Of a stretch of 64,000 nucleotides of DNA, positions 11,774 to 11,963 are shown in pieces. Every line of letters starts with the position of its first letter. The stretch's first letter is position 1. The stretch is taken from contig NC_088853.1 of NCBI RefSeq assembly GCF_963853765.1, forward strand, positions 25,234,001-25,298,000, written 5' to 3'. The translations under genes and the position numbers were made by a program. The notes beneath the pieces are model-generated. The model searched no databases, had not been told where the DNA came from, and was given only the letters and a program-made list of their open reading frames with translations. This DNA is from Magallana gigas (Eukaryota).

Positions 11774-11963
11774 TCAATTAGTCGTCGGTCCTTTGAGCTG
11801 ATCGTAGTGAGAAGGTCCACTGAGTTGACCCAATTCCTGGTATTTGTCATAGTCCACCGCTGTATCATATATCCCGGGGGTTGAAACAAAATCAGAATTA
11901 CTTTTATTCTTCGTATTCTTTTGTAATTCATTTCGTCTCTTGAATACATTGTTTCTTAAAATC
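11774..11963 (-). CDS. Receptor gene 1, last exon: cytoplasmic tail with ITAM-like motif
   Basis: atacag|G acceptor in phase 2, matching the TM exon. Reads (W)ILRNNVFKRR...YQELGQLSGPSHYDQLKGPTTN*. Confidence 0.85.

Follow-up and report, generated by a model that had tools for sequence, protein, structure and literature searches.

Forty-eight bases on the minus strand of Magallana gigas contig NC_088853.1 (positions 11795–11842 of a 64,000-nucleotide stretch, hereafter the window) encode an ITAM-type motif in the C-terminal, cytoplasmic tail of a type-I receptor of the Pacific oyster that is intact and transcribed; sequence motif, architecture and conservation are all confirmed. By sequence, the gene is a member of an oyster family of about 50 genes that have in common a two-exon transmembrane-plus-tail cassette. 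ITAM receptors such as Draper and CgIgR were already known; what appears to be new is a lectin-headed family of ITAM-type receptors. ITAM signalling by the receptor is plausible, given its sequence and the analogy with known ITAM receptors.

Transcript and gene model

Translated on the minus strand, positions 11842..11795 read YQELGQLSGPSHYDQL, the pattern YxxL-x8-YxxL, within the wider frame ...GIYDTAVDYDKYQELGQLSGPSHYDQLKGPTTN* and a surrounding open frame ...STPGIYDTAVDYDKYQELGQLSGPSHYDQLKGPTTN that is followed by a stop. The string DYDK-YQEL-GQLSGPSH-YDQL and its coordinates, as given in the initial annotation, proved exact. The motif (YQEL-GQLSGPSH-YDQL) conforms to the ITAM sequence pattern YxxL/I-x6-8-YxxL/I, with VDYDK directly before it, and the upstream acidic residues described earlier are present as Asp just ahead of the motif.

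The tail had originally been joined to the upstream exon by manual splicing, and its frame was checked with RNA contigs. Public runs were searched for positions 11700–17200 and four of them were compared with the window: X1, X2, X4 (RNA-Seq library) and X21 (polyA). Contigs of X4 and X2 skip five stretches, each with GT..AG ends on the minus strand, defining the joints 11962/12192, 12295/12681, 12883/13020, 13406/14005 and 14273/16891, and a single 1035-nt contig covers the tail, transmembrane and both EGF exons. The manual splice was right: 11962/3 is joined to 12192/3, a Trp codon is split at the transmembrane–tail junction (...ITW, TG|G, to ILRNN...), and the frame used is the ITAM frame rather than another one. 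Loose contig ends at 17100 (X4/X2; 30 letters) match window positions 28003–28032 exactly, and a 19-mer of this end occurs once in the window; the first exon is therefore placed 11 kb upstream, with its ATG at 28059. Joined through six GT-AG introns, the seven exons give an open 1419-nt frame of 472 codons, so that the transcript called for in the initial annotation is now defined by spliced RNA contigs of two runs. It reaches at least to 11730 as 3' UTR. The features of the gene are as follows.

28002–28059, minus strand: exon 1, coding part, with the ATG at 28059, the signal peptide MYASFWIILFSLQCLSYCY and a GT donor after 28002 (X4/X2 loose ends; frame joins G|AA)
16893–17099, minus strand: exon 2, N-terminal half of the predicted F-type lectin domain, including the CAHT His and YYR Arg (RNA joint 14273/16891, GT..AG; Pfam PF22633, 28.6 bits)
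14006–14275, minus strand: exon 3, C-terminal half of the predicted F-type lectin domain, KQYRFRQFYLDVS ... EICEIEIYG (RNA joints 13406/14005 and 14273/16891; full-length paralogue alignment)
13021–13407, minus strand: exon 4, Cys-rich EGF-like repeats of MEGF/laminin type (RNA joints; alignment with MEGF10/SREC-named paralogues)
12681–12884, minus strand: exon 5, further EGF-like repeats (RNA joints 12295/12681 and 12883/13020)
12193–12295, minus strand: exon 6, encoding the stalk and the transmembrane helix LYVVIAVLCISLVVNICTITW (joined at either end in the RNA; hydrophobic segment, then basic residues)
11774–11963, minus strand: exon 7, coding part, 62-aa cytoplasmic tail and stop codon (RNA joint; ≥54 homologues of this tail exon in the genome)
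11867–11869, minus strand: third invariant tyrosine (IYDT), 9 residues N-terminal of the first ITAM tyrosine (invariant column Y32 in the 18-tail alignment A1)
11795–11842, minus strand: ITAM-pattern motif (translation; Tyr codons 11842–11840 and 11806–11804)

The spliced protein comprises the signal peptide, a ~160-aa domain, ~200 aa of Cys-rich EGF-like repeats (about six in the 472-aa model), the helix and the 62-aa tail, which begins ILRNNVFKRRN. The topology predicted from this order, in which signal peptide and ectodomain are followed by a 21–23-aa helix, the basic stretch RNNVFKRRN and then the motif, places the motif in the cytoplasm. The 472-aa model aligns end to end with annotated paralogues of 468–582 aa. 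Pfam returned no match for the EGF exons and tail exon of the gene, matches to EVI2A falling below the cut-off. Among public proteins, no full-length sequence is ≥90% identical to the gene; the one close match is an N-truncated 381-aa ORF from an assembled run, and the next best public protein is 70% identical.

The remaining two runs differ in character. X21, of which about 1 in 100 reads was sampled, contains zero reads on the exons and covers intronic repeats only; at this sampling of ~1%, the result suggests that the gene may be expressed weakly or in certain tissues only. X1 covers introns and shows no joints, which gives it a partly genomic look. In the RNA runs, contig depth rises to 300–560 over two stretches of intron 2, 15196–15379 and 15564–15747, where loose ends are numerous and a G>T is fixed at 15646. 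Both stretches resemble a repeat or transposable element that is abundantly expressed and has no relation to the receptor. Directly upstream of exon 1 (~28165–28400, minus strand), about 11 copies of a unit containing ATATAATG recur every 15–35 bases, an array that may represent either a minisatellite or a reiterated regulatory element (promoter or enhancer).

Conservation of the tail across an oyster family

When the 62-aa tail was shuffled 200,000 times, the strict ITAM pattern arose in 0.5% of the shuffles, which speaks against a chance match. In AT-rich DNA such as the window, however, the bare pattern turns up often: ~20 unrelated matches lie outside simple repeats when all six frames are scanned, and taken by itself the pattern would carry little weight. 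What places the motif firmly beyond chance is its conservation among paralogues and orthologues. With the 62-aa tail as query, a six-frame search of the oyster's own genome gave 40 matches; a profile of 18 tails raised this to 54, and at least 54 related tail exons are thus present. They cluster on contig C1 at 24.8–25.3 Mb (around the window), 31.5–33.5, 12.1 and 49.4–50.7 Mb, and also occur on C10.

In the 18-tail alignment, where mean column identity is 57%, the only invariant columns are three tyrosines, those of IYDT, YQEL and YDQL. Position counts were made on 73 distinct family tails anchored on the first ITAM tyrosine: Tyr stands at +12 in 97%, Leu at +3 in 90% and Leu/Ile at +15 in 89%, and the residues between the tyrosines, G-Q-L-S-x-P-S-H, are well kept too. 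Ser precedes the second tyrosine at -2 in 77% of these tails, and Asn lies at -3 of the first in 67%. The initial annotation had held that loss of the tyrosines or of their spacing among paralogues would undo the claim; both the tyrosines and the x8 spacing are conserved. The family consensus of the two-exon transmembrane-plus-tail cassette is IYDTAEDNAGYQELGQLSGPSHYDQL. Genomic copies use TAT and TAC at the Tyr positions and TTG, CTG, CTT, TTA and CTA at the Leu positions; because the residues have been kept through synonymous change among paralogues, this pattern points to purifying selection on the Tyr and Leu of the tail. The fixed spacing is in part inherited rather than independently maintained, since the paralogues are fairly recent.

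Beyond the genome itself, the tail profile retrieved 57 proteins from 1.84 billion representatives, and the near-identical 381-aa protein P0003 retrieved 81 relatives when used as query. These belong to Magallana gigas, C. angulata, C. virginica, Ostrea edulis and Saccostrea, with weak matches in scallops. The x8 spacing is kept in orthologous tails of Ostrea, Saccostrea and other Crassostrea; the Ostrea tails, for example, read YAELGDLDRPNTYEAL with the spacing unchanged. The cassette is also found on other ectodomains, namely an EGF-only protein (P0048) and a protein with a 240-aa head without Pfam match (P0015), the helix of which, VLCISIVVNGCTITWILRQR, is nearly identical. Relatives carry automatic names such as MEGF10, MEGF6, CED-1, draper-like, scavenger receptor class F and PEAR1-like; these names mirror the EGF repeats only and hide the lectin head and the ITAM. 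In the literature on ITAM, MEGF10 and F-type lectin in combination with Crassostrea, no description of the family was found.

Some related tails depart from this layout. P0020 (199 aa), recovered in the profile search, carries the motif four times in tandem (YQELGELSPPSQYESY, YQELGELDTSSHYDTQ and others), and most of these copies have lost the +3 Leu of the second half. Sister-clade tails (P0078, P0091 and P0102 of C. virginica; P0073 of Saccostrea) show other ITAM-like layouts, among them YENI-x11-YETL, with an x11 spacer against the x8 seen here, and a triple YEQI-x8-YTEI-x8-YQEI.

Lectin head and comparison with known receptors

The initial annotation described the gene as an F-type-lectin/EGF receptor, and this description is borne out by the lectin head (profile and fold), the EGF-like repeats and the type-I architecture of the spliced model. 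Exon 2 matches Pfam PF22633 just above the cut-off. A profile built from 34 head domains of the family matches FBP32 of striped bass (E 6e-19), lectinolysin (1e-12) and eel agglutinin (3.5e-8). In the alignment, the H, NR and ERL of FBP32 correspond to the CAHT His, YYR Arg and QYRF Arg of the family; all three are present in the studied gene, with the His of this His/Arg/Arg sequence motif for fucose binding not universal among family members.

For structural comparison we modelled residues 21–176 of P0061, the head of the closest full-length annotated relative rather than of the gene itself (P0061 is 67% identical to P0003), with the alignment of family heads as input. The model has a pLDDT of 96.9, and F-type lectin domains take all of the first ten places among its PDB matches (TM 0.73). 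Fold matches include lectinolysin, the S. pneumoniae fucose-binding module (SpX-1) and the striped-bass fucolectin FBP32; eel agglutinin 1k12 is the 12th match, and CBM32 modules rank lower than F-type lectins. Profile and model together support the assignment of the head as an F-type lectin domain.

Likeness to F-type lectins (eel agglutinin, FBP32, lectinolysin and oyster bindin) thus extends over profile, fold and the His/Arg/Arg motif, whereas the oyster head differs from them in an insertion of 4–6 residues between the two Arg positions. Characterized F-type lectins are soluble or form part of toxins or sperm proteins, whereas here one domain heads a predicted signalling membrane receptor. 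The characterized oyster F-type lectins are the oyster bindins (PMC12221842). F-type lectin reviews mention transmembrane combinations, and a lectin–EGF–ITAM architecture is absent from them.

The earlier comparison with Draper and MEGF10 stands as a proposed functional likeness and fails as to the N-terminal EMI domain and the NPxY motif. Draper, CED-1, MEGF10 and Jedi-1 have in common with the oyster gene a type-I topology, many MEGF-type EGF repeats and an ITAM in the tail; the pattern is present and conserved in the oyster family, where recruitment of Shark or Syk would be its candidate function. Pfam scans of the gene's exons and of its relatives gave no match to an EMI domain, the N-terminus being the predicted F-type lectin domain instead. 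NPxY is absent from the 62-aa tail, the family consensus reading only N-A-G-Y and the studied gene D-Y-D-K-Y. The oyster tail is also much shorter, at 62 aa, than Draper-type tails, and its sequence is specific to oysters. Lacking the EMI domain and NPxY, the receptor is, by its sequence, not a member of the Draper/CED-1 family.

Another counterpart in function may be CgIgR of the same species, a type-I receptor with a C-terminal YxxL-x8-YxxL that starts Y-x-E-L-G-Q. In the published CgIgR ITAM (DYTELGQCDPETPYEKL / EGDYTELGQCDPETPYEKL), both the x8 spacing and this start agree with the motif studied here (PMC6994640). CgIgR differs in carrying five Ig domains, whereas the studied gene has a lectin domain and EGF repeats; its transmembrane helix and tail lie in one exon, against two exons here, and the remainder of its tail is dissimilar. 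The family tail profile, searched against the 1.84 billion representatives, did not retrieve the CgIgR tail. We considered this tail as a homologue of the family tail and rejected it on the one-exon structure, the dissimilar remainder and the missing profile match, leaving a resemblance only. The likeness is best treated as shared partner specificity or as very old homology, and since exon structure differs and the profile misses CgIgR, the experimental support for CgIgR transfers to the family by resemblance.

The exact CgIgR peptide is encoded at C1:74351079 (100% match), with four further matches nearby; the five CgIgR-type tail exons are clustered at G000:C1:74095384-74404666 (loci L045–L047). 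In each of them the published ITAM is preceded by two MTQHYDD repeats and by a further YTDL/YTNL upstream.

Two further oyster proteins, CgCLec-TM1 and CgCLec-HTM, are haemocyte membrane lectin receptors that couple recognition of glycans or bacteria to Syk and ERK (PMC13027682). They have a C-type fold, a single-tyrosine (hemITAM) or non-classical motif and no EGF stalk (PMC13027682), whereas the studied receptor combines a predicted F-type fold, a full two-tyrosine ITAM pattern and an EGF stalk.

Candidate kinases and proposed function

The initial annotation named Syk and Shark as the kinases that would read the motif, and candidates for both exist in the oyster: Syk is published, and Pfam identifies a Shark-type gene in the genome. 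When SH2 matches were crossed with tyrosine-kinase matches across the genome, a locus on C8 emerged. At 10.776–10.786 Mb on the minus strand it encodes, in order, an SH2 domain, ankyrin repeats, a second SH2 domain and a tyrosine kinase, each open frame being confirmed by Pfam (G000:C8:10776000-10786100, loci L031 and L032). This is the Shark architecture, which by sequence makes the gene a candidate ITAM reader beside the published CgSyk. CgSyk is reported to associate with the CgIgR ITAM and to promote ERK phosphorylation and phagocytosis (PMC6994640), and an accession for oyster Syk has been listed (PMC13344425). In Drosophila, Shark binds the Draper ITAM directly via its tandem SH2 domains (PMC6219719).

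The anatomy of the receptor most likely fits a clustering-activated one, with a head putatively specific for multivalent ligands, a rigid EGF stalk, one helix and a short tail. Under this reading, a multivalent glycan ligand would cluster the lectin heads, and a Src-family kinase would then phosphorylate the two tyrosines, 12 residues apart. Once doubly phosphorylated, the motif would dock a tandem pair of SH2 domains, that of oyster Syk and/or that of the Shark-type kinase, and the docked kinase would switch on responses further downstream, for example ERK signalling and engulfment. This four-step route is the one published for oyster CgIgR and Drosophila Draper, from which we infer it by analogy. 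That the tail recruits Syk and/or Shark in a phosphorylation-dependent manner is, in our assessment, rather probable.

Among the competing explanations, the one that survives best reads the YxxL pair as YxxPhi sorting or endocytosis signals that need no phosphorylation to bind the clathrin-adaptor mu subunit, which would make the protein a constitutively internalizing scavenger-type lectin receptor. Both YQEL and YDQL fit YxxPhi, the tail is short and near the membrane, and automatic annotation labels relatives as scavenger receptor class F or MEGF10. However, one such signal suffices, and this explanation accounts neither for a second tyrosine at exactly +12 in nearly all of the 73 tails nor for the conserved G-Q-L-S-x-P-S-H between the two. 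We regard it as improbable as the sole function of the tail; sorting and kinase-coupled functions could coexist.

It is less likely still that the tyrosines dock other SH2 or PTB proteins, so that the tail would be inhibitory or adaptor-coupled rather than Syk/Shark-activating. Two variants could be envisaged. The second half of the motif could be an ITIM recruiting an SHP-type phosphatase, as SHYDQL fits S-x-Y-x-x-L and the Ser at -2 is frequent in the family. Tandem-SH2 phosphatases usually engage two ITIMs spaced by more than 12 residues, however, and the 12-residue spacing found here is shorter than is usual for such pairs. Alternatively, an N-x-x-Y could bind a CED-6/GULP-type PTB adaptor; the family consensus and the Asn at -3 of the first tyrosine agree with this, but the studied gene has D at that position (DYDKY) and NPxY occurs nowhere in its tail. 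The third invariant tyrosine (IYDT), which has no role in a plain ITAM, speaks for additional docking in either variant, whereas the resemblance of the motif to the CgIgR ITAM, a reported Syk binder, speaks for the kinase-recruiting reading.

A functional ITAM could also serve a non-immune role, for instance in the recognition of gametes or of self, in the settlement of larvae or in the development of tissues. Sperm bindin is the most familiar oyster protein with F-type lectin domains, bindins being the characterized oyster F-type lectins named in a review (PMC12221842), and the RNA contigs derive from whole-oyster or metatranscriptome libraries. Set against this, the published oyster ITAM and hemITAM receptors CgIgR, CgCLec-TM1 and CgCLec-HTM act in haemocytes, and a large, tandemly expanded family of lectin-headed proteins would be typical of immune recognition repertoires; a non-immune role thus seems distinctly unlikely. 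A chance match without function in a tyrosine-containing tail, for which the background frequency of the bare pattern in the window could be cited, is effectively excluded by the shuffling result, the invariant tyrosines, and spacing and flanks conserved over ~50 paralogues and several oyster genera through synonymous codon turnover.

Recruitment of Syk and/or Shark by an ITAM therefore remains the reading that we prefer. Its furthest extension is that the ~50 germline-encoded, fucose-lectin-headed and EGF-stalked receptors feed through one transmembrane-plus-ITAM cassette into Syk/Shark and constitute diversified activating immunoreceptors that trigger engulfment by haemocytes. We advance this tentatively, as a possibility that falls short of being the likelier outcome. 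Knowledge of ITAM–Syk signalling comes mainly from the antigen and Fc receptors of vertebrates, bivalves have no adaptive immunity, and to our knowledge few invertebrate ITAM receptors, namely Draper and CgIgR, have been experimentally tested. If the extended reading is true, full two-tyrosine ITAM signalling would be central to a large protostome recognition system. In this family the two-tyrosine tail is strictly conserved, the head is variable and putatively binds sugar, and the same genome holds both candidate kinases, which raises the question of whether bivalves use a diversified lectin–ITAM repertoire for pathogen recognition. The family may also supply candidate genes for studies of disease resistance in an oyster of major importance to aquaculture.

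The window contains other copies of these elements. The tail exon has a degenerate second copy at 11259–11408 (minus strand), ~370 bp downstream of the stop codon; it reads ...IYNTAEDNAGHQELGQLSGPYLYHQL, and the first ITAM Tyr is therefore replaced by His. A third remnant, KLCGPSHYSQL*, is found near 9560 (9538–9588). In the four runs, no RNA joint led to either downstream copy, including from the transmembrane exon. A Logan-derived peptide, P0036, represents the same exon type as the duplicated tail with the Tyr intact. A second receptor of the same architecture occupies 53652–59631 (plus strand), with a lectin head, EGF repeats and the helix FYGIVGAVCISLILNGVLIAYIIVKW; a run of N (assembly gap or mask) interrupts it near 56040–56170. 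Its tail (59452–59628, plus strand) differs and ends YEDLCETNKAQLYETY*, with x8 spacing, Tyr at the last position and the motif forming the very C-terminus. Elsewhere in the window, (TA)n and (ATATAC)-type microsatellites at 15790–15877 and 17529–17614 translate as YIYIYI and yield dozens of false ITAM-pattern matches in a regex scan.
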